From the sequence record MK250017.1: 64,000 bases of DNA, one strand, 5' to 3'. Under the pieces are notes generated by a model that worked only from the letters and a program-made list of their open reading frames with translations, was not told where the DNA came from and did no database searches. Made by a program: the position numbers and the translations under genes. Positions 1 to 47,006 of this stretch are shown here, in pieces (positions within the stretch are counted from its first letter, which is position 1; every line of letters begins with the position of its first letter).

Positions 1-1899
1 ATATATATACGGTTTATCTTTATCAGTTTCTTTATAAGGATTTTTCTAACTATCATATGATTTTATATATGTATACATAGTAGCTAACTATGAACATATT
101 TCATTTGGTGCGTCAGAATCTTCATCAGAATCATATTTATATAATGAAGCGATATAATCATATATTTGTTTATATTCATTATCACCTGTATATTTTTCAC
201 CTGCATTCTGAATAGCTTCATCATCTAATTCCTAACCGTATTTCTCTTTATTATCGACTGTAAACTATTTAGTTATCTTTTCTTTATATGCTTTATTCTC
301 ATTCTATACATATGATGATATTAACTATTTAAATTTGTTAAATTCCTATTTAATTTTAGTTTCTGATACATTTTTTCCATTGATATTATTAAATATATGT
401 TTAACATTATCATTGAATAAATTCATAAAATCTAACATCAAATCAGAATCTTTTCTCTATTCAACAATTACGCGTTTATTTATAATATCTGTTATAAGAT
501 TATAAAATTCCTATGAATACTTATCGGATGTTCCTGGTAATAAATTAATATTAGTTAATAAACTATAATAATAATTCTGATAACTATCAGCATCACCAAT
601 AGGTATATATGAAAAATCATCATCATATTGCTTTACATTTTTATATACGTCTGAATCAATATGCTCATTAATAAGAAATTTACAGTCTGTATAATTTTTA
701 TCATATTTACATAATGGTAATGTATCCAATGATTTATATATTTTAATAATATCATTTACATATTTTTCACGCGCATCTAATAATCGCTTACTTTCTTTCT
801 GTATTGCTTCATAAGGATTACTTGCTGTTTTAATTCTATTTGTTTGTCTATATGCCTTATCTTTAATTTCTCTTTTTACCTTCTTTCTTTTCCTCTTTTT
901 CTTTGCACGTTTTCTCCATGATTTCATATCTGACTTTGTTACATCCTCTGCTATAATAGATGAACCGAATTCATCTTGAGACTCATTTAAATTCATCATA
1001 ATAGAAGTATCAAAGATTGTTACACCAGTATTTAATTTATCATTTACAATGTCAAATGTAAACAAAGATGTGTCATATTTTTTATTATTCTTAAATCCTT
1101 CCTTTTTATTCGCATTAATTATAGAAATATCTAAATTATCATAACTTATATCAGATGAATCAAGATACCAACCGGAATAATATTGATAATTACCACTTAT
1201 TGTATTTTTACGTGTATATGTACCTCTATATCTTCGTGCTAATACGCAAGGTAATAAAGACTAACATAAATTATTTGTTATTAATGCATATAAATATCCT
1301 TCTTTCTGAAATTCATTATTAACTGCTGATATATCTTCAACAACATTAAAATCTTCATTCATTCCAAGTAATGTATTTTCCAATACAATATGTCTGTTAC
1401 ATTTTGATGGATATAATCTGAAATAATCTTCACCATTATTTGATGACATTACACGTCCTTTTTCAAATATTGATTTTAACGGTTTCATTTTTCCGTCTTG
1501 CTTTACAGAACCTATTATAGTATTGTTATCTATAGTATCACCAGGTTTTATATTTAATGTATATTCAACTGGTGTCGGATCTTTAACAGTTGCATCTGAA
1601 AATTCAATTATAACTCTTGTACTTGTATCTATATCAGATAAAATATCAGGTACCTCTTCAGATGGAGTTACAATAAGTTTCCATAAATCTTTATCATTAT
1701 ATAAATTCTATAATACTGATAAATCAGTAGAACCAACAATATCTTTAAAATCTGTTGTTATATCAGATTTTGCATAATCGACTGCACATAAATTTATATC
1801 ATTAAGATTTATAGTCTGCTATCCTTCAATTTCATCTGTATCTATCGTTAATGCCTTTGTTATTAAGTCATCTAAATATATTTTCTCTTCTTTTGTCAT
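1..1899 (-). CDS. Large TAG-recoded hypothetical protein, probably virion-associated (>633 aa, runs off window start)
   Basis: ATG at 1899 overlaps TGA of upstream gene (ATGA); frame has no TAA/TGA down to position 1 when TAG is read through; joins track ORFs 1261..1488 and 511..1065. Confidence 0.75.
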
Positions 1900-4568
1900 G
1901 TGTATAAATCATAATCTTTTCCGTAACATCTTAATATCTGACTACCATACAATGGTAATGATGAATCAGAATAATAAATTTCTGTATCTGCATCCTCAAC
2001 TTTATCTAATCCTAATAAAGTACCGTCTTGATATTTTGAATCAGGATATTGAACAAATAAAGATGCATCATCAAAATAATTTCCTGCTTTATCTAAATCT
2101 TTTTTCATTGCATTTCTCTATTCTGTTATTGCATCTTGATCAATATAAAGAATAGTTGGCAAATCCTATTTTATTATTTCATAATTAGATTTAGCATTTT
2201 TTAAATATAAATAAAGTTTTCTTGTATCAGGAATACCAATATTAATTTCAACATTTGTACCTATACTTGTTATACTATTAGTTATATAATCATATAATTT
2301 TAAAGAACGAACTGTATAGAAATTTGTTTTTGATTTATTTGCTTTTTTAAATAATTTATTAATTGCAGCAATTACTTTTACCATACCTAATAGATTTCCC
2401 GATGAATTCGCTTCTACTTTTGCCTTATTGATTTTATAATTCCTAATTAATTTTAGTATAACTTTTAATTGTGGAAATATTTCTTTTAATATAGAAAATA
2501 ATTCATGAACTAATTGAAATGTAGGTCTTTTAGTTGCTTTTGTTGGATCACCTGTATATTCTTCTTCTACAATACCTAATTCAAATTTTGATATTGCTTC
2601 TTCTGCTTCTTTTTTCTTTGCAGTTTCCTAAGCAATTCTATTTGCTTCATCTATTGCATTTTTTTGTTCACTTAACGTTTTATTAAAACCTTCTAATTCA
2701 AAATGGATTTTAAATGTAAATTCTAATAATTCAATAGTCTAATCTTTTCTCATTACATAACCTTCATCTATTGCATTTATAATAGACAACACAGATGAAG
2801 AGTCAAATATTTTCGTTCCATCTTTTTGATGTGCATTTGATAAAACTTTTGTTAACTATTTTTTTGCTTTCTTTGTTGTCGGATCTGCATATATATTAAG
2901 AGTCATTGTAAACGTATTTAAATCGTTCGTGAAGTCATATAAATGTTCTGCCTTTATTTCTGCACTAATTGTTGTATTGGAAGCGATGTCGGTTGCGATA
3001 TGAAGTCCTGATGAGATTGCTTGAGCTTCTATCTGATTCTATAAACTTGTTAAATTACCTGAGAATTGATTAATTCCATCTTGAATTGCTTTTTCTAATG
3101 AAATAACTGCTCCATCAGAATCAAGTCCCATTTCAACAAGCATATCCATGAAATCTTCAAATGAATCTATACCATCACTTAAAACATCTAAATCAACATT
3201 ATTAAATTGACTTATTAACATTTTAATTTCATCTATTGAATCTTTTATCTGTATTATAATAAAGGAATTATATATTAAATCAGATGCGCGCGATAATTCA
3301 TCCATTAGTGATTGTTTTATAATATCTGGATCAACATCCACATTTATTTTTGATGATACAGTACCACCAGAAGAATGCTGAATACCTGTTTCTTTTTCTT
3401 GCTCTTCTTGTTCTTTTTTCCTACGTTTTTGTTCTTTACACGCTTCTTTCCATGCCTTATACTTATGAATATAATCTGAACACATATAATATAATTCAGG
3501 TAATGTATATCCTGTATATTTAATACATTGTTCATTTATCATTACCCATATAGTATTCATCAAAAGTTCCTATGCATCTTTTAACACTTCTTGCATTGAA
3601 GGTAAATTTGTAATTGCATCATTTATTGTTTCATAATATTCATTTTCTAAGTCATTATAAATTGCTATATACATATCTTTCAATGATGTACAAATACTAC
3701 CTATTGCTACTTTTGCACTTGGTAACATCTGAATATTCTTTGGAAACATTTTAATAATACCAGTGATATTAAATAATGTAGAATCCATAAGATTGAGAAT
3801 AGACTATGCCATACCTAATGTTTCCTAATTAATACCTAAGTTATTCATTAAATTACTAGCACCTCCTGCAATTAAAGACTATATAGTAACTTCAAGATAT
3901 TGTGTTACTGCATCAGTAATTGCGCCAGATATTGCCATACCTGGCGCCTAGTTTATGTCAAGGTTATCAAGATCGACCTATTCTGCTTCTTCTACATTGC
4001 CAAATTCATCAACTTTTGTTATAGCTTTCTTTTCACCATATTTAGTTAAATCATTGTAAAAATTTGTATATGCTTTAATTAATTTCGGATGAGTCTATGT
4101 AATTTTTTTATATTTAGAAAATTCTGTATTTAAGTCATTTAACTATTCTTTATAATTCTTTACAATTTGTTTAAGATTAGTTGTTAGAGCTGAATGTGGA
4201 TCTTGTTTTTTTGCTTCTTCATATTGATCTTGATATTCTGTTAATTCACTGTTTACTTTATTAATTTCAGTTTGTAATGCGTTAACCCATGATTCTGCAT
4301 CTTTTAATTCAGTTTTATAATATTCTATTCTTAATTTTGCAGTTTCTACTTTCTTCGCATATGGAAGTGTGTCATCAAACTGAACAATACCTACATCAAT
4401 GATACCATAATCATATGCATTAATATCAACCATTTCAACGGTTGTCTTATGTTGACCTTTTTTCATATCTTCGGTATCAACTGTACCTGCAGACATTTTT
4501 TTATTTGAAAAGAAATCATAAGAATTACCAGGTGAATTTGTTAAATCTATATCTAATATTGTTGCCAT
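1896..4568 (-). CDS. 890-aa TAG-recoded coiled-coil-rich hypothetical protein (late/structural block)
   Basis: Five track ORFs (4143..4613, 3570..3788, 3039..3563, 2166..2384, 1896..2108) are one frame separated only by TAG; starts MATILDIDL, ends TGA. Confidence 0.8.
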
Positions 4569-10166: not shown

Positions 10167-13100
10167 ATGAGTAATATAGATCAAAGAGATAAATTAGTTT
10201 TTTATACAGAAAAAGGATATGAAATTCCCGTTGAAAAAACATATAGTATTCAATGGGAAATAATACCACATGTAAAGTTAAAATCATATTTTCTTCATAA
10301 TCCAAAAGGTCATTTCATGTATGATATTGATGATACAGATCATATATTAACTGTTGAATTTGATAATAAAGGTTTATTTAATTATGTTGATAATATAAAA
10401 GTTAATACTGGTATTATAAATAATGAAACAGGAAATTCTGTAGAATTTACCATTAATAATATTACTGAATTAATATTGTTTAATAAAGAATATACATATA
10501 AAAAATCAAAAGGAACAATATTTAATAGAAATGAAAAACGTTGGGAGGAAGATTTTGATGTTCTTAAGGGAAATATTTATAATACAGTAAGATTAACATT
10601 TAATACATTGGTTGGTTCAATTACATAGGATTATCCTGTAAATTATATATTCGAAACATGTACAGTAGAAAATAATAATAATTATAAAAATTTAACTAAT
10701 TTAACACTTACATTATTAGATAATAATAAAGAAGCGCTAGGTTAGAAAACATTTGTTAATTATCTTATTGTAAATAATTTTAATAATTATGAAGATTTAT
10801 TTCCATGTGTAAGGTATATAGGTTCAATTACATAGGATAAAGTTTCTACAGAATTCGTTGCTGCCAGCACATTTATAATATTAGATGAAAATGGTGATAG
10901 ACCTAATTTTAATATTGCAACAGATGAATATTATTTAAAATTTGAATTTCAGAAAGATTCTGAAATGAAATTTATTTCATCTGATAGTGTTGCTAATATT
11001 ATTTGGGAAGACTCACATGAAGTTAAGTCAAATATAACATAGGACGCACATAATCCTTTTGTTAAAGATACTAATATACCAATATATTTTTCTGTTGGTT
11101 TTCAGACAGCAGTAGAAGGATGCTATCAAAATATAATGGCAATGTATATTGTCAGCAATAAAACAAACAAGAAATATATTTTAGGTTTATTTACATTCTT
11201 AACTGAAGTAGTTGGTGAAGACGAAAGATATAGAGCATTATTAGGAAATCTCGGTATACCAGATCCTGTAAAATATCCAAATATATTTAAATCATAGGAT
11301 CCTGATGAACAAGGAGTTGATTGGACATTAATTAATGATAAGTCAAAAGAACTTATGATTAATTATGATAATATATTCCCATATGTTGGAACCTATAAAG
11401 CATTAATGGGAGCTATTAAATTCTTAGGATACGGTGATTTAATATTTAAAGAATGGTATAAAATAAAAGATTAGAATAATAAAGACAGATATGTAACTTT
11501 ATAGACATATGATTTATAGAAAGGTGAATCTTTAAATACAAAGTTAAAGAAAATAGGTGTTACATACGGTGAATTCGAACGTTATAAAAAAATAAACAGA
11601 TTATCAATGATATATCATCTTAATGAAATAGATGATGAAACAGGCGAATATCTTGATATGTATACACGTCGTCTCGATAATCCAGCAAAAGATAATCCTA
11701 CAACTGCACCAGAATCTGGTTTATATAAAGCATCATATAAAGATACGCATCATTAGGATTTATCAGATAACTTTACATAGAAACAATCTGTATTTTTCTA
11801 GTTACCTATAACAAAAACTATTTATGAATATAGAACAGATGAAATATTGGCAAAACTCTTTTCTGTTAAATAGTGGTTGGAAAAATATATTTTAGGAGTT
11901 AACTGTTTTATATCAGATATATGTGGAGAAGGTATAATAGTAGAACGTTTAAAAAATCAAGCTTATGTTACATAGCATCATCTTTAGGATATTACTACAA
12001 TATCTAAAGTGACTCCAAAGATTATAAAATATAATCCAAATATATATGTTTCACTTGATTCATCAAATAATGAAATTCATACAGATACTATATTAAATAC
12101 ATCTCATTTAGATTCATCAATAGATGATGAATGTATCAATGATATTTTATTTAGAAATTCAACAGCAATATTAAGATGTTCATTAAATGAATTTGATTCT
12201 TTAACAATTGGTGATTATGATGATTTCGAAATAGAAGATTTTATTATAGATACATCAACACCAAATGGTAGCATAGGAACTGTTTATATTTCCGCACCAT
12301 TGGAAACATTAGTAACTGTAAATGAATATCAATTTCAGTTAACAAATAAAAATGTATCTTCTGGAACACTTGCAGAATTTACAGATACAAGTTATATAAA
12401 CAATCCTATTCTTATATAGGATAATGAAATCTTATTTTATGATGATACAAAGAATTTCACAAAAATTGATAATAAAGAATTGCCTATTATAGAAATAACG
12501 CAAGGTAATTTAAGATACTGTCATGGTGATTGGAAATCTAATATCGCTTATTCTATAAATGTTGTTTCTGATTAGAAATCAGGAAAAGAATATTATGCAT
12601 TATATGAAACAGAAACAGATGAACCTGTTTATAAAGATTTTCAGAAAGTTATTTTATACCCAATGGAATCAGAAAGACATTATGATAAGTATAAATTATA
12701 TTGGGCATAGAGAACTGATAAGAAAATAAGTTCAAAACACTATAATGGATTAAATTCTGAATTTATATATACATCTTAGAATAAGTGGAATGTACCTCAG
12801 ATTATTATTCGTAATTATAAATGTGGTAATAATGATGAATTACTTCCAGGCGATTATATTCTTGAAATTATAGAAGGACGTATATTATTCAGAAATAAAC
12901 AATCTGATTTAAATATCAATAATGGTAAAGCATATGGATGTGAATTAGAATTCGGTGAAGAATTAGAAAGTAGTGAACAACCTATTAATGTAAATTATAC
13001 ATATATGTCTGATAGAGTTCCTATATATACTATAGATTCTTTAAATGATGTTTCAACATAGGAAGGTATAGAAAAATGTGTACATACAAACAAATATGTG

Positions 13101-15581
13101 GATGTTTCAGTAAATAGATTAGGTAATTATACAGTATCAGTAAATGCATATGATTATTATAATAATATATTTGTTAATCAGAGTGATGATATAACAACAG
13201 TTACAACAAAACCTATAAGTCTCGATATTATTCTTAATGAATCTGAATTAGTTAATAATAAAGATTTTTATCATTATAATGCTAAAGGTACTTATATGAC
13301 TAATAGTGAAACTAATACATTATTTGATAGTATTAATAAAAATGGAGATTATCCAATTTATCCATAGACATATAGAATATATGATATTGATCCTATTGTA
13401 GATAGTCCAAATACTATAGAATATGATAATATATCTTATGCAATAGATACACCTAAACCTGGAAACTTTATTATATTTAATAACTTTACAGAACAAGTTT
13501 TAAATATAATAAAAACTAATGATATATATAAATTTACATTAGTTGATGAAAGTCCAAATAGAGAAATATTACAGAATTCATCTTATGTTGGTTTATGTAT
13601 ATATGATTGTATACAAAAAGATATATTAGTTGATATATATCCGTTTGAAGTACAAAAATTCTATACATTTGATTCTTCAATAGTAGATTCATCATATTAT
13701 CGTTTTGATGCAAATAATTCTTATATAACAGTTAAAGACACATCTAATATGTTAAATGCTAGCGCATTTAAAGATATTTATGAAAAATCAATTGAATCCT
13801 CTGTTAATTCATCAATTAATTCATCTGCATTTTTTACAAATTCTATAAATGCATATGTATATACTGCTAATGAACATGTATTTGAACCAAATGATGAAAT
13901 AATATTAGATACATCAAACTTATTATCTTATATTCATACATTTAATAAAAAACAGTATTTTATGAAGAATTAGGTTATCAAAATTTGTTATGCAGATGAA
14001 ACAGTCATACATAATGATTATACTGATAAAGCTATAGATAATGAAACTGCATATCGTATTATTAATGTTAATCAAAATGAAGATAAAACATTTACATATA
14101 CAATAAATGGTTTAATAGATCTTGATAAACTTAATAATAAGTTATATCATAATAATGCATGTAGAGATATGAGTACAGGTGGTAAGTTAATTACTAAGAA
14201 TCCTTATAAATTAAAGATGTGTCCTGTACATTTAAGAGCTGCATAGTATGTATTACGTGTAAATGGTTATGGTGAGGAATTTACATCAAGATATAACAAA
14301 GGTGTAGTTTAGAGAACAACTGTAACATATGATCCAAAATCATTATTATTTGATAGTTATCTTGATACAACTTATTCTGCATAGATATTTGATTATGATC
14401 CTAAATTATTATAGAATATATGGATAAATGCAAAAGATCAATATGAAGATGAAACTCTTTATATCTATAGAGATAAACCTGTTACAATATCAAAAGGTAG
14501 AAATATTATATTAAGACCTGATACTTTATAGAATATATTATCTGAAAAGTTTAATGATACATCTGTACCATTAAGAATTCATTGGAATTGGAAATCTTAT
14601 ATTATAGATGATCATGAAACATTTGAATCAGAACAAGGCTTAATAGATAAACAAGTTGTATTTAAATCTGCAAATAAAATATTATCAATTAAACCTGAAT
14701 TATTAGGGTCTCAATCACCTAATATGATATGTTGTGATGTATATGGAAATCGTGTTATAAATGAAGCAGATGGATTTGTATATGTAGATGCAGATGGAAG
14801 TAATAATACTGTTGGTAAATTCGAAGAAGGTACAAGAAATATTATGTATAAAGATGTATTTATTGTTGGTTTTGATGTATAGTTTAGTCCATTAAATACA
14901 TTATCTACATATGGAGAAACTGCAACATATACAATAAGTGAAACTGGTTCTTCAAATGAAAATACAAATAATATATCATTTAAATATAAGATATATTATA
15001 GTGATGGTACTATTGTTGAAGATAAAGGATGTAATTGTAATTTACTTACATAGAAAGGAAATGTTTCTAAAACAAATAAGGTTAAATTTACAGTTAAAGA
15101 AGCAACAGAATCACATAAATCTAAAGTTGGTGAATTACAATGTAAATTAACTATTGATAAAAAATCAGATAGAGATATTATTCAACATGAACAAATTCAT
15201 ACATTAGATATTAAACAATATGGTACATCAATAACAACAAATATATATGATTTATCATTTAATGTAAAAGATATTCCGTCAGAAGGATTAGATAATATAG
15301 AAGAATATATTATTAGAGATTATATTAAAGATATAAAATATACATTAATAAGAAGTGAAGGTGAAATAGAATAGATAGAATCGCCAACATTTGAAAATTC
15401 AATGTTAAAAATAAAAGGCTTTAAAATAATTCATAATCAACGAGGAATAACCAATAATATACCGGAAAACAAATCAGGTAGAAAAGAGATAGGTATTTTA
15501 CAATTAACAGTATAGTTTAATGTACATGGTATTTAGAATGATATAGAAACAACAGGAATGTGTTCTATATATCAATTATAA
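10167..15581 (+). CDS. Giant TAG-recoded structural protein, probable baseplate wedge (gp7-like), 1804 aa
   Basis: One frame free of TAA/TGA over 5.4 kb; segment IFPYVGTYKALMGAIKFLGYGDLIFKEWY resembles baseplate wedge motifs; synteny with gp6/gp25. Confidence 0.7.
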
Positions 15582-38619: not shown

Positions 38620-39201
38620 TTAATATAAATCTTCATCATCATTTTCATCATACAAATAATCATCAGAATCAGTTTCCTCATCATATTCATCATCTTCTTG
38701 AGGATCTCCAGTATATATTTCTTCTACATTATCATTATCAATATAAAATGTGAATGTTCCATCTTCATATGATAACTTTATAGTGTGAGAATCTGCATCA
38801 TCTACATCAATAACTGTTACATCTTTATCATTTCTAAGTTCCTCAATATCCTTACAATATGAAGAATCAAAGATACCTAAAGCTCCTGCATCTACTCCAT
38901 ATGTTTTACCAGACATTGAATCATATGAACCATCACCAAATGCAGTTCCATGAACAAAACCGATAATATTATTATCATCTGTGATTATACCATCTTCATA
39001 ATCTGGTCCCCAACAATTTTCATAAATATCATCATCTAAAATATAACAAGGATCGCCAATAACCATTGTTAATTTTTCACCTTCTGTATCTATTGTTTCA
39101 GAGTAAGAATCTGAACTACTACTATAACTTTCATTAATTTTTGTTTTAACAGATTTTGCAATAGAAGTTATAATATTTTCATAAAGTTTTTTACTATTCA
39201 T
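38620..39201 (-). CDS. Acidic hypothetical protein (IGDPCY / GDGSY / VDAG family)
   Basis: 193-aa ORF; N-terminal KKLYENIITSIAKSVKTKINES leader. Confidence 0.7.
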   Translation of the reverse strand: MNSKKLYENIITSIAKSVKTKINESYSSSSDSYSETIDTEGEKLTMVIGDPCYILDDDIYENCWGPDYEDGIITDDNNIIGFVHGTAFGDGSYDSMSGKTYGVDAGALGIFDSSYCKDIEELRNDKDVTVIDVDDADSHTIKLSYEDGTFTFYIDNDNVEEIYTGDPQEDDEYDEETDSDDYLYDENDDEDLY

Positions 39202-39318: not shown

Positions 39319-39356
39319 AAAATGAGATATAACTATTGAATGTTATATCTCATTTT
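39319..39356. terminator. Terminator closing the radical SAM / FETNSSS operon
   Basis: AAAATGAGATATAAC...GTTATATCTCATTTT immediately after last paralogue. Confidence 0.75.
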
Positions 39357-39362
39357 ATTTAA

Positions 39363-39668
39363 TTAACTATCATAACCATATCGTCCAAATGCATGAACAA
39401 TTTCACCTCCTGGTGTTTTATATGATTCATCATATGTTTCCATATCATAATCATTAAAATAATCATCATATGATTTATAATCATCATCTGAATCATATTT
39501 CTCTTGATTTGCTTCATACTCTTCTCTTGTAATGAAAACTTCACTATATTTGCCATATAGAAGTTCACCATTTTCCCACTTTTTATATTCTGAATCAGAA
39601 CACATAGTAAGTGTATGGACAGAACTTGAATTGGTTTCAAATACACCTTGTCTTACAGATACTTTCAT
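39363..39668 (-). CDS. FETNSSS-motif protein 5 (short type, 101 aa)
   Basis: MKVSVRQGVFETNSSSVHTL. Confidence 0.85.
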   Translation of the reverse strand: MKVSVRQGVFETNSSSVHTLTMCSDSEYKKWENGELLYGKYSEVFITREEYEANQEKYDSDDDYKSYDDYFNDYDMETYDESYKTPGGEIVHAFGRYGYDS

Positions 39669-39690
39669 TTTATTAAATTTATCTTAATTT

Positions 39691-40251
39691 TTAATTACCT
39701 TTATCAAAATCCCAAGATGAACCAAAATCTGGTGTTTCTACTTCTTCATCAACATTATCATTACCTGTTGATACATAACTATTATAATCAAACAAATAAT
39801 TCAAAAGTCTTTTTTCATTAAATACTGTTGACTCAATAAAATCACCAAGGTCTTCTGTATGGTCAATATAACCATCATCTTTTTCACCTTCTGCATTCTT
39901 ACATACTATGTAAGTATATGTGTCACCATTATCATATGTATGAGTATGCATAGAAATATCATCATAAACAAATACAGCTTTAATTCCATATTTTGCAAGT
40001 GTTTCTTTAATTGCTTGCATACATTCTTTAACTTTATCGATATTTTTCCAATAATATCCAATAATAGCTTCCCATAGATATGATGCTTTATCTGATGTAT
40101 TGAAATAGATTTCAAAATCCCATCCAAAATCTCCTTTATCAAATCTTACTGCATCTGGATATTCAGTAATATTTGATTTCTTAATAATAGAAATTGCATG
40201 TGTAGAACTTGAATTTGTTTCAAATACACTTTGTCTAATTTGTACTTTCAT
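39691..40251 (-). CDS. FETNSSS-motif protein 4 (long type, 186 aa)
   Basis: MKVQIRQSVFETNSSSTHAI; DKASYL, GYIDH, TGNDN. Confidence 0.85.
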   Translation of the reverse strand: MKVQIRQSVFETNSSSTHAISIIKKSNITEYPDAVRFDKGDFGWDFEIYFNTSDKASYLWEAIIGYYWKNIDKVKECMQAIKETLAKYGIKAVFVYDDISMHTHTYDNGDTYTYIVCKNAEGEKDDGYIDHTEDLGDFIESTVFNEKRLLNYLFDYNSYVSTGNDNVDEEVETPDFGSSWDFDKGN

Positions 40252-40277
40252 TTACTTTATTTTTAAAAATTAATAGA

Positions 40278-40634
40278 TTAACATGGTTGATATGTAGAAA
40301 CAACAATAGTAGAATCAACACCATTAGAGTCTTTTATAACCTCTGTAATAGTATCCCAACCTTCATCCGCATAATGATAAATATCCTTCCATACTTCATA
40401 AGGGATATAATCATAGTCATCGAACCAAATATCTTCATTTACATTATTAGGATCATAAATTAATTGATCCTTTGGGACATCTTTTACATTAATAAGTTTG
40501 TCTGCTGATGGTCCATTTTCAATAACCATTTTTCCTTCTTTAAATGCTTGCCAATCACTACCATTAAATAATGCTAATGAATGTGTAGAACTTGAATTCG
40601 TTTCAAATACGCCTTCTCTAATCTGAATTTTCAT
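40278..40634 (-). CDS. FETNSSS-motif protein 3 (short type, 118 aa)
   Basis: MKIQIREGVFETNSSSTHSL. Confidence 0.85.
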   Translation of the reverse strand: MKIQIREGVFETNSSSTHSLALFNGSDWQAFKEGKMVIENGPSADKLINVKDVPKDQLIYDPNNVNEDIWFDDYDYIPYEVWKDIYHYADEGWDTITEVIKDSNGVDSTIVVSTYQPC

Positions 40635-40637
40635 ATA

Positions 40638-41309
40638 TTACAAAATATAAATTTTTGGCTTATTATAAGGTGCATATGCAATATCTTGAAATGTGATAAT
40701 ATTTTCATCTTTCATTACATCATCAAAGAATTTATCGAACTCATCTACAGTAATCCATTTATTATTACCATGTTCAGAAAAATATTTTACATGTGTATCT
40801 GTATTTTCTATTGTTTCTGTATATACACCATGTTCAAGATTATTGATTACATGTACAATATCATAACCTTTACTTTTTGTATATTCTTTAATTCGTTCAA
40901 CAAATCTTGCATATACTTTAGTATCTGTTAGCAATGTATCATGATATTCATTTTCAAAATAAGTTGAACCATATGCATCTCTATTATAATCTTCTATATA
41001 ATATGCATTTTCATTTAATGCCATTGCAATATACTGAAGTTTTGCAATCCAGTTTGAGATAATATAATAAACATTTCCACATTCATCACCATTTTCAAAA
41101 TATATGCCTGTAAGTGTAAATGTTTTATTTTCTTTATCAATACAAAGTAAAGGATTAAACATATCATTATCAATGTTTTCCTTATATTGCTCTATAATAG
41201 CTTTGAATATATTATCTCTAACTGAATTTATAGAACCTTTAGTAATTTGCAAACTATGAGTAGAACTTGAATTGGTTTCAAATACTCCTCTCCTAATTTG
41301 TATTTTCAT
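40638..41309 (-). CDS. FETNSSS-motif protein 2 (long type, 223 aa)
   Basis: MKIQIRRGVFETNSSSTHSL; ATG 2 nt after previous stop. Confidence 0.85.
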   Translation of the reverse strand: MKIQIRRGVFETNSSSTHSLQITKGSINSVRDNIFKAIIEQYKENIDNDMFNPLLCIDKENKTFTLTGIYFENGDECGNVYYIISNWIAKLQYIAMALNENAYYIEDYNRDAYGSTYFENEYHDTLLTDTKVYARFVERIKEYTKSKGYDIVHVINNLEHGVYTETIENTDTHVKYFSEHGNNKWITVDEFDKFFDDVMKDENIITFQDIAYAPYNKPKIYIL

Positions 41310-41311
41310 AT

Positions 41312-41809
41312 TTAACAATATTCATAAAAATTTTTATATTTAGAACCTTGTGGAAGATCATTATCACTGCTAAAATAATTATTATCAAAACATTGACATG
41401 ATGATTTATTGTTAAAAATATATCCTAAAAGATATTTTTCAAATGTTTCATCATCAACATTATTATTGAAAATATTATCCAATACATCTTCACACCAACC
41501 ACTTGATTCATATTCACCATTTTCATCAATAAGGTAATCAAACTTAATTTCATATTTTGAAATTACCTTATTAATACGGTTTTTGCAATAAATGAAATTT
41601 GTTAATGAATCATTCATTGTCATGTAATTAAACAATGAATCAAGACGTTCCTGAAGTTTATCATTTGTTTGACGTTTATCCCATGGTATACCAAGTTTAA
41701 ATGTCATACCTGCATATTTTTTAATATTTACTGGTTCCAAACATATAGTTAATGTATGTACGGAACTTGAATTTGTTTCAAATACACCTCGTCTAATTTG
41801 TACTTTCAT
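41312..41809 (-). CDS. FETNSSS-motif protein 1 (long type, 165 aa)
   Basis: MKVQIRRGVFETNSSSVHTL. Confidence 0.85.
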   Translation of the reverse strand: MKVQIRRGVFETNSSSVHTLTICLEPVNIKKYAGMTFKLGIPWDKRQTNDKLQERLDSLFNYMTMNDSLTNFIYCKNRINKVISKYEIKFDYLIDENGEYESSGWCEDVLDNIFNNNVDDETFEKYLLGYIFNNKSSCQCFDNNYFSSDNDLPQGSKYKNFYEYC

Positions 41810-41823
41810 AATTATATATTATA

Positions 41824-42711
41824 TTACTTCTTGCTATATTTGTTTTGAATAAAATGAAACATTTCATCCATTGTCTTATCACCAATAGGGAATCGCTCTT
41901 TTGAAATTGAATTCTTTGCAAATTCACCCTTTACCATATCAATATAGAATGTATAACCTCCATCATCACCCATATAGAATTCATCCCATTCCTCTGATGA
42001 AAGAATACGCTGTACTTTAAGCTGTTCAATCGCAAGATTATCAAAACTCAAAACCTTAAAATATGTCTTAATCTCATCAAGATTATCAAAAAGATATTTT
42101 GTATTATTCTTAATGAATTCATCATGTTGCTTATGATAGTTAATACCACGCTGCAAATCCTTATATCCAAGAAGCAATACTTTCAAATCATGATCACGAA
42201 GTTTTTGAATATCAGATTCTTTTAGAATTCCAACAATAGTATGCAGAACAGTATTAGGAATACTATTCATCTTTTCAATAAGTTCATCTGTAGGATGAAT
42301 CAAAGAAACACCAATACCATAAACATACTTATGTTCAGACCATGTTTTCAATTTATCATAGTTTCTCAAGAACTGATTCTGATTAACAGTAATGTTTGCA
42401 TACACCTTTTTCTTTTTCAAAAATTCAAGGAATGCAACAAGATCAGGATGATCTAGGTCATTACCATTAAGAGCAATCTCTGTATATGGATGAAGAGTAT
42501 TAATAAAAGGATATGAAAACAAATCACCGTGTTTCCCTTCTGGTGAGCACCCCTCGTAACAAAACTGACACATCTCTCGACACTTATCTGTTAATTTGCA
42601 ATCTACGTTCTCAGAAAATGACGGAATAAATGAGTCTGCATCCGTTCGACGTATCTTAGTTCCATCACTCAAAATCGTTACAATGTAATTACCATTCTTA
42701 TAACTTGGCAT
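41824..42711 (-). CDS. Radical SAM enzyme (295 aa)
   Basis: CxxxCxxC (CREMCQFC), GN/GG-like motif EIALNGND, ANITVN, GIGVS; no obvious SPASM cysteine cluster. Confidence 0.9.
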   Translation of the reverse strand: MPSYKNGNYIVTILSDGTKIRRTDADSFIPSFSENVDCKLTDKCREMCQFCYEGCSPEGKHGDLFSYPFINTLHPYTEIALNGNDLDHPDLVAFLEFLKKKKVYANITVNQNQFLRNYDKLKTWSEHKYVYGIGVSLIHPTDELIEKMNSIPNTVLHTIVGILKESDIQKLRDHDLKVLLLGYKDLQRGINYHKQHDEFIKNNTKYLFDNLDEIKTYFKVLSFDNLAIEQLKVQRILSSEEWDEFYMGDDGGYTFYIDMVKGEFAKNSISKERFPIGDKTMDEMFHFIQNKYSKK

Positions 42712-42758
42712 AATTCTTTTTATTTAAAAATTAATATTTGTGTTTAAAACTGATATTA

Positions 42759-42766
42759 CAAAGATA
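42759..42766 (-). promoter_or_regulatory. Bacteroidetes-type -7 promoter element driving radical SAM operon
   Basis: TATCTTTG about 50 nt upstream of 42711. Confidence 0.65.
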
Positions 42767-45389: not shown

Positions 45390-47006
45390 ATGGAAGAAAG
45401 TAATCTTATTAATAATGATAATATATATAATACTGATATGAGTACATCATAGTCTACTATTGGTGGAAATGCAACCACAAATAATAAATTTAATAAAGAT
45501 GATTTATAGGAAGTTACAGGTGGAGGAGGTGGAGGTATTGTTACACCACCAACTACAATAGTTGATGGATCTGAAACATCATAGACGACAGGATCTTTAA
45601 GACCTATATTATTAATATTAGGTGATGGTACATCTATAGATGAAGAACCAGTTTTGCTTGAAGAAGATGGAGACACAACATATAAAGCTGTTATAAATTT
45701 AGATTTGGAATCTGATATACCTATCATTACATTTAAAAGTGAAGCATCGAGCAAGTGTGATGCAAATTATGTAATTGCTGTTACAGAATCAGATAAAAAT
45801 ATACCTGTTAGTTATAACTCAAAAAATTTGAGTACAACATTTACTAATGATGGTAATAATTGGTGTAGTGTTGAATTTAAAAATCCATTAGAGGTAACAT
45901 TTCCAAATAAAAATTTAACAGCTGATAATTTCCATGATAATTCTAAAATAATTGTGCCTGTTATATCATGTAAAGAAAATACAGGAGCAGAAAGAAATAC
46001 AGTAATAACATTTAATATTGGAAATTTTTCTATATTACATAATATACAAATGAATGTTATATAGAGTGCATATTCAGGAGAAATTACAGCAGGACCTTGT
46101 GTATTAAAATATGTAAGTGGTGAAGGTAAAGATAACAAAACATATAAATATAAAATATTAACTAATAACACATATTATATATTTAAAAATAATGGAAGTA
46201 GTTATATATATGAAAATGAAAATGATAGAGATGCTAATAATGTAGGAAAATTTTTTTTATGTTTTGGTATTGTTGATTAGAATGGTAATATATATGATAA
46301 TTTACCAAAGGATTTTAATGAATTAACAAATAATTATACGAATTTAATAACATTATCAAAAACAAATTATAAATTATAGTTAATATATCAAACAGAAGTG
46401 TATAGAGTTGGAACTGCTGCAATAATGGAGATTGATATACCAAATGATGCGAAACTTTAGGATGTAATTACTTTTAGTTATAATAATAAACAATTTATGA
46501 CACTTAAATATGGACATTAGGATTAGGAAAATACAATAATTGCAAGGGCAAAATGGTATGATTCAACTAGTCCTATTACCGATGGTAGTTTATATTTTTT
46601 AACAAGTAAAAACGTTAAAAAAGAAATATGGTATAGTGGCACACCTTTATAGTCTTATATGACTCAAGATAATATTATATTTTTAATAGATAATAAATAT
46701 CAAATAAATACAAATAGCAAAATATTAAGTAATGTATTAACTGAATATAACTTAGAAAATAACGGTGGTTATGATTTTAATTCCTATATGAATTGTAACG
46801 TTATAGATATTTCTGATATAATAAATGATGTAGATGGAAACCATGTATATTTAAAAGATATAGAAAATGGTGAGCCTTTTATAAATTTTAAAATATATAT
46901 TTATACACGAAATAATTAGAATGAATATATTTATTTAGGGTATATAGCAATGGGAGAAACATATAATGAAAGTGAAGCATTTATTGGTTTTTTTGATAAA
47001 AAATAA
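45390..47006 (+). CDS. 538-aa TAG-recoded beta-rich protein with BACON-like segment (putative tail/adhesin)
   Basis: Single frame with TAG=Gln; GGGGGG linker; CKENTGAERNTVITF resembles the BACON N..R pattern. Confidence 0.6.

Follow-up and report, generated by a model that had tools for sequence, protein, structure and literature searches.

What does a radical S-adenosylmethionine (SAM) enzyme do in a megaphage, and how is it related to the row of small proteins encoded directly behind it? This question is raised by a locus in a 64-kb stretch of DNA from sequence record MK250017.1 (the whole stretch that was analyzed, hereafter referred to as the window). The region shares 100% identity with Prevotella megaphage Lak-A1 (MK250015, ∼541 kb) and 72% with Lak-B phages. 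Here, six co-directional genes lie on the minus strand with 2–26 nt between them in the open reading frame (ORF) listing. The first gene (41824..42711) encodes a radical-SAM enzyme of 295 amino acids (aa) with the cysteine motif C44xxxC48xxC51, which matches phrog_16999 (E 1e-34), and all five products that follow begin with MK(V/I)x(I/V)RxxVFETNSSS(T/V)H. A preliminary description of this DNA, based on the letters of the sequence, had pointed out this shared MK(V/I)x(I/V)RxxVFETNSSSxH start, which we could find in 5/5 products, and had suggested that the enzyme modifies it. In a six-frame scan of the window, FETNSSS occurred exactly five times, always at these five N-termini, and the same was true of NSSSxH. 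Because both strings are confined to the five N-termini, the motif is not a chance feature. On the basis of the current results, the enzyme and the motif proteins very likely form one functional, and probably physical, unit, as judged from sequence comparisons. The best explanation for this unit appears to be a two-component radical-SAM system, widespread in large phages, in which one single-cluster enzyme resembling SkfB and SuiB is accompanied by one to six dedicated clients. The reading that we favor, with a probability of roughly 0.45, is that these clients are the modified substrates of the enzyme.

Linkage and fusion of the two families

The occurrence of the two families was compared in viral, bacterial and archaeal sequences. 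First, a seed of the long type of motif protein (the type represented by the 186-aa product of the fourth motif gene) was used to retrieve the best 80 loci, with 10 kb on either side, from IMG/VR. A homologue of the enzyme (32–98% identity) was present in 75 of these loci, on the same strand and usually less than 1 kb off, and each locus contained one to six tandem motif ORFs. Second, an enzyme seed gave 79 IMG/VR loci (±6 kb), 78 of which had the motif nearby (77 with strict FETNSSS-type ORFs and one with three WETNSSS ORFs); the last one lies at a contig end. Third, in GTDB contigs from bacterial and archaeal genomes or metagenome-assembled genomes (MAGs), again seeded with the long type, linkage was observed in 66 out of 79 cases, and the exceptions were mostly short contigs. 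The hosts in this set include Clostridia, Bacteroidota, Candidate Phyla Radiation (CPR) bacteria, Methanobrevibacter and isolates such as Eubacterium plexicaudatum ASF492. Finally, tblastn against 50,697 GenBank phages identified the long type in 24 records and the enzyme in 25. The 24 records are the same in both searches (15 Lak and 9 Microcystis phages), and the 25th enzyme-bearing record is Salmonella phage Arash. In Microcystis phage Ma-LMM01, gp130 (motif) is located two genes from gp128 (enzyme, 35% identity to the Lak enzyme). Thus, FETNSSS proteins do not commonly occur without the enzyme gene (75/80, 78/79 and 66/79 loci, and 24/24 GenBank phages); the opposite outcome had been named in advance by the preliminary description as speaking against its proposal.

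The viral loci without a nearby enzyme gene include L064 and L002, the latter a 29-kb ENA contig. Locus L062 seemed to be unlinked as well, and its enzyme gene was found 23 kb away in the same genome; the other unlinked viral exceptions come from genomes estimated to be 9–59% complete. We also clustered all neighbor ORFs of 155 loci. No third gene was conserved beyond sub-clades, including no protease, transporter, immunity or RRE/PqqD-like gene. Judged by gene content, the module is therefore the enzyme plus the motif proteins and nothing else.

The two families could also be found in one polypeptide. In Salmonella phage Arash, gp146c (OQ632216; L241:3491-4921), a 476-aa protein annotated as 'methyltransferase', consists of a motif domain followed by a radical-SAM domain and is matched by both phrog_28997, the family of the motif proteins, and phrog_16999. 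Residues 1–143 are of the long type (MYLTQIRYGFATNSSSSHS...GYGWD...AKRDY...GYIDHES...LGGNDN; hhalign against the long-type alignment, probability 97.7, E 1e-12), and residues 171–452 form the radical-SAM domain (BLASTP against the Lak enzyme, 2e-18). The protein is not discussed in the paper on phage Arash. A search with the fused architecture gave 726 matches, the best 120 of which are 435–570 aa long, with 92–100% query cover and mostly 30–37% identity. Their sources are phage contigs as long as 584 kb and records under the names Methylobacterium ajmalii, Thermoanaerobaculia and Promethearchaeota. The string (F/L/H)ATNSSS(S/T)HS was located near residue 11 in 119/119 fused sequences examined, and T-N-S-S-S-x-H, G-W, K..Y, D-H and G-N-D-N are invariant in fused and unfused forms alike. 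Genomes with a fused protein carry that one copy of the motif and no extra clients, and the neighborhoods of fused homologues were uninformative. Unfused enzymes begin with MxxYKNGNY. The C-terminal ..F/YxKGN of unfused long-type proteins aligns onto the hairpin that opens the radical-SAM domain of the fused proteins, which has the look of a fission/fusion junction and hints at packing of the partner's C-terminal strand against the N-terminal sheet of the enzyme. In addition, a few proteins (P0241, P0242 and L038/L039:8115-9476) contain two FETNSSS motifs or a radical-SAM ORF running into the next gene; these are probably gene-caller merges or cases of alternative stop-codon use.

A further indication came from the variable positions of the N-terminus. 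Long and short paralogues were alike at 5.18 out of 8 such positions within a genome and at 4.50 out of 8 between genomes (permutation p ∼5e-4). Such likeness would be expected from co-adaptation to one resident partner, and gene conversion at the 5' ends would give the same pattern. The split between long and short types is older than the phage lineages, and therefore the likeness within genomes fits co-adaptation. At one locus (L089:5417-7838), three paralogues flank a single enzyme gene, and all three have changed in concert to WETNSSS and MK(E/Q)(T/V)(I/V)R. Linkage, phyletic match, fusion and concerted evolution together are the reason why we consider a functional, probably physical, partnership to be very likely.

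The motif proteins and the enzyme

All five partners match phrog_28997, a family with no functional annotation, although only the 186-aa protein does so over its full length and the others are matched at the N-terminus only. The 186-aa protein (paralogue 4, 39691..40251, minus strand; MKVQIRQSVFETNSSSTHA; phrog_28997 E 7e-21) is a canonical long-type member, and 372 full-length homologues of 165–200 aa were identified in metagenomes. In an alignment of 46 long-type sequences, Q4, R6, F10, E11, T12, N13, S14, S15, S16 and H18 are invariant or nearly so, as are G43-W44, K55..Y58, G127-Y-x-D130-H131, T162-G-N-D-N166 and the C-terminal K184-G-N186 with which the protein ends. Long-type clients have no conserved Cys. 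The AlphaFold2 (AF2) model of the 186-aa protein has a mean predicted local distance difference test (pLDDT) score of 90.5 and a predicted template modeling (pTM) score of 0.86. Its sole low-confidence segment is residues 1–12 (pLDDT <50), although this is the most conserved part of the protein. Foldseek found no match to this model in the PDB, an exhaustive VIA comparison gave a best Z of 3.0, and a sequence search of the PDB with the long-type profile also found no match. BFVD returned a family member only, whereas three all-viral unnamed clusters were matched in the ESM Atlas with a template modeling (TM) score of ∼0.8. Another ESM-Atlas cluster, of 261-aa viral proteins with Tad2-like PF11195, has a TM of 0.55 to the long-type fold over residues 12–169. 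This predicted resemblance is a possible link to anti-defence sponges; no Tad2-like domain was detected by Pfam in any partner variant scanned.

The 101-aa protein (paralogue 5, 39363..39668, minus strand; MKVSVRQGVFETNSSSVHT) represents the canonical short type. In an alignment of 37 short-type proteins, the motif is followed by a W..GEL turn, a variable acidic Tyr-rich linker and a C-terminal TTPSGDxVVAFGxYGYD, and R6, E11, N13, S14–16 and H18 are the sole invariant residues. The three other Lak partners, also on the minus strand, are divergent and keep the motif perfectly. The 165-aa protein (paralogue 1, 41312..41809; MKVQIRRGVFETNSSSVHT) is of the long type (hhalign against the long-type alignment, probability 99.1, residues 1–143), has lost GYIDH and TGNDN, and has a body cluster restricted to the Lak clade. 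The 118-aa protein (paralogue 3, 40278..40634; MKIQIREGVFETNSSSTHS) is of the short type (probability 99.4 against the short-type alignment, residues 1–85) and is missing from Lak-B phages. The 223-aa protein (paralogue 2, 40638..41309, starting from the ATG at 41309; MKIQIRRGVFETNSSSTHS) aligned with the long-type profile over residues 1–26 only, and its Lak-clade-specific body forms a cluster with members of 221–223 aa from Lak-like contigs only. Of the two subtypes proposed in the preliminary description, the long one thus holds for the 186- and 165-aa proteins and the short one for the 101- and 118-aa proteins, whereas the 223-aa protein, which had been assigned to the long subtype, belongs there only over its first 26 residues.

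To view the family as a whole, 258 unique motif proteins were clustered by BLAST on their bodies, leaving the N-terminus aside. The long cluster has 143 members of 141–267 aa with several sub-types, the short cluster has 84 unique members of 92–156 aa, and small clade-specific clusters include the Lak 223-, 165- and 118-aa proteins; client bodies therefore fall in unrelated BLAST clusters. Client sizes range from 92 to 404 aa across the family. The longer variants (233–404 aa) include one Cys-rich type of ∼310 aa, and ten of them gave nothing above noise in Pfam, NCBIfam and PADLOC scans. Across 85 diverse N-termini, M1, R6, E11, N13, S14–16 and H18 are invariant, and Met1 is always 8–9 residues ahead of the motif aromatic. 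A hidden Markov model of the 34 N-terminal residues, searched against 1.84 billion representatives of clusters at 50% identity, matched 7,285 clusters (1,027 at E ≤ 1e-10), with the motif nearly always within residues 1–34.

The enzyme family (5,659 matches) is strongly conserved, with 60–70% identity across many contigs. The PHROG label of phrog_16999 is 'Fe-S oxidoreductase', with no function given beyond it. C44, C48 and C51 are invariant in 47 diverse homologues, which have no other conserved Cys; several members have three Cys in total. Since these three are the sole conserved Cys, the enzyme is predicted to contain a single [4Fe-4S] cluster and no SPASM/twitch auxiliary cluster. Its AF2 model (pLDDT 94.8) comprises a three-stranded N-terminal sheet, a radical-SAM barrel and a helical/β C-terminal domain that is Cys-less where SPASM/twitch would sit. 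In some Lak variants (P0121; loci L005 and L088), a 132-aa mini-intein (Hint domains PF07591/PF14890) is inserted exactly before C51, and an unrelated phage (the genome of L062; G002:C1:75010-77283) has a ∼1.3-kb insertion at the same position. These insertions at C51 are indirect evidence that the cluster site may be functionally essential.

When the enzyme model was compared with known structures in Foldseek and VIA, at least the first 30 matches belonged to radical-SAM enzymes (highest Z, 17.7). Two peptide maturases, SkfB (Z 17.7, 263 residues aligned) and SuiB (Z 17.2, 269 residues aligned), came closest among solved structures, which is in line with the kinship to maturases that had been suggested at first. 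Both are ∼3 Z ahead of the next matches, EpeE (14.8), BlsE (14.4), viperin (14.3), ChlB (13.9), PqqE (13.4), anSME (13.1), MoaA (12.2) and PFL-AE (9.2), and theirs are the only alignments that start at model residue 1, in the N-terminal sheet. At the sequence level, Pfam PF04055 gave 12.1 bits for the Lak enzyme, below the gathering cut-off of 29.5, and is present in some close homologues and in all fused ones. Because of its presence in these relatives, the family should be regarded as a divergent member of the radical SAM superfamily and not as a non-member. None of the six operon products reached threshold in Pfam, NCBIfam or PADLOC scans. The NCBIfam matches of the fused homologues are weak and mixed (NirJ, MftC, ScmF, viperin, MoaA, StsB and SkfB), all far below curated cut-offs. 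No match to a RiPP recognition element (RRE; RiPP, a peptide synthesized ribosomally and then modified post-translationally) was found in the enzyme with Pfam or NCBIfam; its N-terminal sheet, three-stranded and ∼30 aa long, lies within the SkfB/SuiB alignments and is not a full winged helix. A profile search of the PDB gave weak radical-SAM matches only, apart from the soluble domain of T4 holin T (6pxe_T, E 0.007) in the C-terminal domain at residues ∼207–272 of the enzyme profile (SFDNLAIEQL...FYMGDDG...YID), which was treated as probably due to chance.

Proposed substrates or subunits of the enzyme

Several observations led us to favor the reading that the clients are substrates. The motif is polar, reactive and anchored to the terminus, it is the sole feature conserved in every partner type, and it persists where the body motifs decay or are absent. 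In the model, this N-terminus is not packed against the domain that follows it. One enzyme serves one to six partners, which is the pattern of a maturase with several substrates, and the nearest relatives of the enzyme modify peptides. We infer a mechanism in which the N-terminal strand of the client, M-K-x-x-(I/V)-R-x-x-x-(F/W)-E-T-N-S-S-S-x-H with a constant spacing from Met1, would dock on the enzyme, probably together with the conserved strand at the extreme C-terminus, so that the T-N-S-S-S-x-H loop would be placed at the SAM/[4Fe-4S] site. The 5'-deoxyadenosyl radical would abstract hydrogen from a residue of this loop, most plausibly a Ser, and the client would thereby receive a modification that it requires; a Ser-derived aldehyde, an epimer, and a crosslink with either His or the invariant aromatic of FG(W/Y) are examples. 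In long-type clients, GW, K..Y, GY(I/V)DH and (T/G)GNDN would line a pocket that the loop, once modified, completes. With regard to docking, enzyme residues K177, R235 and R273, which are basic in the unfused clade, are candidate partners of E11; this comparison is confounded by phylogeny and offers a lead only.

It should be noted that a number of points weigh against clients as substrates. Enzymes are seldom fused to their own substrates, fusion partners being more often subunits or consecutive enzymes; moreover, the fused genomes have no extra clients, and in the fused forms the enzyme contains the motif domain as a constitutive part. The enzyme also lacks the auxiliary clusters used by SkfB, SuiB, anSME and most of its peptide-modifying relatives, and Pfam and NCBIfam scans revealed no recognizable RRE domain. 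The long-type body has enzyme-like invariant polar residues (DH and GNDN) that would suit a catalytic or ligand-binding subunit equally, and the fused radical-SAM domains match the viperin and MoaA models of NCBIfam about as well as those of peptide maturases, all far below cut-offs. In addition, the low pLDDT of the N-terminus could be a modeling artifact of invariant columns. A prediction of the complex of enzyme, 4Fe-4S, SAM and the 186-aa partner from their own alignments scored 0.18 against a mark of 0.32 and was counted neither way.

Some of these points are shared by the main alternative, which we regard as serious though less likely, namely that the motif proteins are obligate, exchangeable subunits or adaptors and that the target of the enzyme is a third molecule (a nucleotide, a DNA base, a cofactor or a host signal, for example). 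In that case, phosphate, metal or substrate would be bound by the TNSSSxH loop together with DH and GNDN and handed to the SAM site, and each paralogue would serve as an alternative subunit for specificity or regulation. Fusion to the N-terminus of the enzyme is widespread and ancient, the long-type ..KGN C-terminus on the hairpin that opens the radical-SAM domain suggests an interface as well as a fission junction, and the invariant DH, GNDN and Ser-rich loop resemble a ligand or metal site. However, short-type and divergent paralogues have no DH or GNDN and yet keep the motif invariant, and therefore the shared function cannot need the body pocket. Matches at 1e-9 to 1e-10 link the fused radical-SAM domains to the models of viperin and MoaA, and viperin reaches a structural Z of 14.3, whereas the best structural neighbors are peptide maturases and not nucleotide enzymes. 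Moreover, the phage enzyme has neither the C-terminal extension of viperin nor the auxiliary cluster of MoaA, and these two neighbors, unlike the phage enzyme, have no obligate partner protein. The modules are often surrounded by replication or nucleotide genes (primase and resolvase in Ma-LMM01, polymerases and RNA ligase in Arash, DNA polymerase B in L002), and inteins such as those in the enzyme are typical of nucleic-acid-metabolism genes, but no third-party substrate gene or pathway is conserved nearby in the 155 loci. The TM of 0.55 shared by the long-type fold and the Tad2-like ESM-Atlas cluster would fit this alternative, while two to six redundant subunits per enzyme are harder to explain than several substrates.

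Activation of the clients as radical enzymes seems improbable. In this case, the enzyme, like a glycyl-radical activase, would place a stable radical on the Gly of the client FG(W/Y) or on the Ser loop, and the clients would perform radical chemistry. Its size of ∼295 aa, its single [4Fe-4S] cluster without an auxiliary cluster, its folded clients and the pattern of one activase with several clients are similar to PFL-AE-type activases, and a Gly beside an aromatic residue (G43-W44 in the long type, G88 in the short type) is the sole body residue common to long, short and fused types. On the other hand, the structural match to PFL-AE (Z 9.2) is far below those to SkfB and SuiB, neither long- nor short-type clients have the glycyl-radical signature (an RVxG[YF]-type motif), and long-type clients have no conserved Cys for a thiyl radical. 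Moreover, phages that infect an oxygenic cyanobacterium carry the module as well, a setting in which glycyl radicals would be fragile.

A classical RiPP pathway, in which the 20 N-terminal residues serve as a recognition leader that is removed and the variable C-terminal core is modified and released as a peptide, has very little probability. The conserved N-terminus with a variable remainder, the several tandem 'precursors' beside one radical-SAM enzyme and the RiPP maturases among the nearest structures gave rise to this idea. SkfB and SuiB, which form a sactionine and a Lys-Trp crosslink, respectively, are the best match to the phage enzyme over nearly its whole length, including the N-terminal region (Foldseek E 4e-6). 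Like the phage system, they combine one enzyme with co-encoded ribosomal products, and their substrates are recognized by an N-terminal segment. However, identity is only 11%, and the phage enzyme has no twitch/SPASM Cys, no full RRE and no match above an NCBIfam cut-off. Their substrates are peptides of 30–60 aa, whereas the phage partners are 92–404 aa long, are predicted to be folded and are sometimes fused to the enzyme, in which case the 'precursor' would be the N-terminus of the enzyme itself. The RiPP-like leader and variable core of the preliminary description could thus not be upheld: the canonical partner (165–200 aa) is conserved over its whole length to the last residue and is confidently modeled (pLDDT 90.5), its most invariant residues are reactive and polar (E, T, N, S, S, S and H), unlike a typical hydrophobic leader, and neither SPASM/twitch Cys nor a conserved third gene, such as a leader protease, transporter, immunity or RRE/PqqD-like gene (155 loci), was found.

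Finally, the idea that the motif is simply the first strand and loop of a phage family that happens to adjoin a radical-SAM gene, for which the few loci without such a gene nearby (L064 and L002) might be cited, is effectively refuted by co-occurrence counts and fusion, as linkage is reciprocal across 32–98% enzyme identity, host phyla and gene orders, the phyletic match in GenBank phages is perfect, fused proteins number in the hundreds, and most exceptions are contig ends or incomplete genomes. Two other candidates, pyruvoyl-type N-S self-cleavage and a SurE-like or metallophosphatase-like active site in the partners, were rejected as having no fold or sequence support.

With regard to clients as substrates, the best functional analogies would be the pairs of anaerobic sulfatase-maturating enzyme (anSME/AtsB) with sulfatases and of QhpD with QhpC, although auxiliary clusters, target motif and substrate fold all speak against placing the phage system in these families. 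One anSME matures several paralogous folded enzymes by oxidizing a Ser or Cys of a short N-terminal motif into a catalytic residue. It needs two SPASM auxiliary clusters that are absent from the phage enzyme, its target is (C/S)xPxR and not TNSSSxH, and no PDB match above Z 3.0 was obtained for the long-type model, while sulfatases adopt the alkaline-phosphatase fold. QhpD is a SPASM radical-SAM enzyme that makes Cys thioethers within QhpC, the ∼100-aa subunit of quinohemoprotein amine dehydrogenase. In that system a small protein is modified internally into an aromatic-containing cofactor site, which may be compared with the motif and FG(W/Y) in clients of 92–190 aa; in contrast to QhpC, long-type clients have no conserved Cys, and no homology could be detected.

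Operon setting and implications

The operon described at first, with a promoter box, a CxxxCxxC gene, five packed motif genes and a terminator, was recovered in full from the ORFs, the box and the hairpin. A promoter-like −7 box (TATCTTTG, 42759..42766, minus strand), a consensus match of the Bacteroidetes TAnnTTTG type, lies 48 nt 5' of the radical-SAM ATG. Directly past the last stop codon is an intrinsic-terminator-like hairpin (39319..39356, minus strand) with a 15-bp stem and an 8-nt loop followed by a T-run; three terminator-like sites were observed in the region by a hairpin scan, compared with 0.5 expected. As had been stated before, the operon is free of TAG and has a host-type promoter box: all six genes are TAG-free with TAA stops, and they are contained in a TAG-free block at ∼32.8–44.7 kb. 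The operon may be expressed early, as had been presumed from this setting, of which the TAG-free block and the box are themselves real. The second TAG-free block of the window spans ∼52.6–64 kb. Elsewhere, reading TAG as a sense codon yields long ORFs, for example 10167-15581 (+), 1896-4568 (−) and 45390-47006 (+), and the first of these has the window maximum of 31 in-frame TAGs in 1,804 codons. The window resembles a patchwork of gene blocks, some recoded and others in the standard code. TAG recoding is known for Lak phages, and the in-frame TAGs of the window agree with it.

Past the terminator, the gene at 38620-39201 (−) encodes a very acidic protein of 193 aa (phrog_20074, with a weak DUF4241 match); it has its own upstream region and lies outside the operon. 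In other genomes, neighbors restricted to sub-clades are an adenylosuccinate-synthetase-like protein (GDEGKG, perhaps PurZ-like; L022:8871-9971 and ∼22 related loci), a second small radical-SAM-like protein with CxCxCxxC (250 aa, L025:7708-8460) and a Thg1-like protein (L031:11710-12528).

An effector or anti-defence role of the paralogues is neither supported nor excluded by these data. Tandem diversification and change in copy number, with five motif ORFs per locus in Lak-A and Lak-C and four in Lak-B (loci L006–L008), are compatible with such a role; PADLOC defence models had no meaningful match among the six operon products. We found no relevant literature on the motif family, its PHROGs, the pairing of enzyme and motif, or phage radical SAM in anti-defence. 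The preliminary description knew of no characterized function for the motif, and none was found in literature, Pfam, NCBIfam or PADLOC.

A radical-SAM enzyme with dedicated protein clients is a known kind of system. What sets the present version apart is the absence of auxiliary clusters, a new partner fold, a Ser-rich motif anchored to the terminus, exchangeable or fused partners and a phage-wide distribution. That the chemistry or the logic is new in kind is less likely than not, yet a real possibility. In the same way, it is conceivable, though we would not count on it, that these modules constitute a new radical-SAM class, in which a minimal enzyme free of auxiliary clusters would receive a universal N-terminal 'plug' (R..xETNSSSxH) on interchangeable proteins of new fold; the outcome would be either a new Ser-derived protein-bound cofactor, or paralogues presenting different ligands (a nucleotide or a host immune signal, for example) to one and the same radical active site. 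If the latter were true, phages would be diversifying these paralogues in tandem arrays as an anti-defence toolkit.

Both motif and enzyme are present in archaeal MAGs and in phages whose hosts are Bacteroidota, Clostridia, cyanobacteria, Salmonella or CPR bacteria, and their near-obligate pairing and natural fusions lead to a clear hypothesis of an enzyme plus its clients. The cultivable Salmonella phage Arash and Microcystis phage Ma-LMM01 offer tractable starting points, with small and easily expressed proteins. Folded proteins could thereby be found to undergo new radical-SAM chemistry that needs no auxiliary clusters, and such work could also bring to light a new fold or cofactor and the role of a tandemly diversifying, presumably early-expressed gene array in megaphages.

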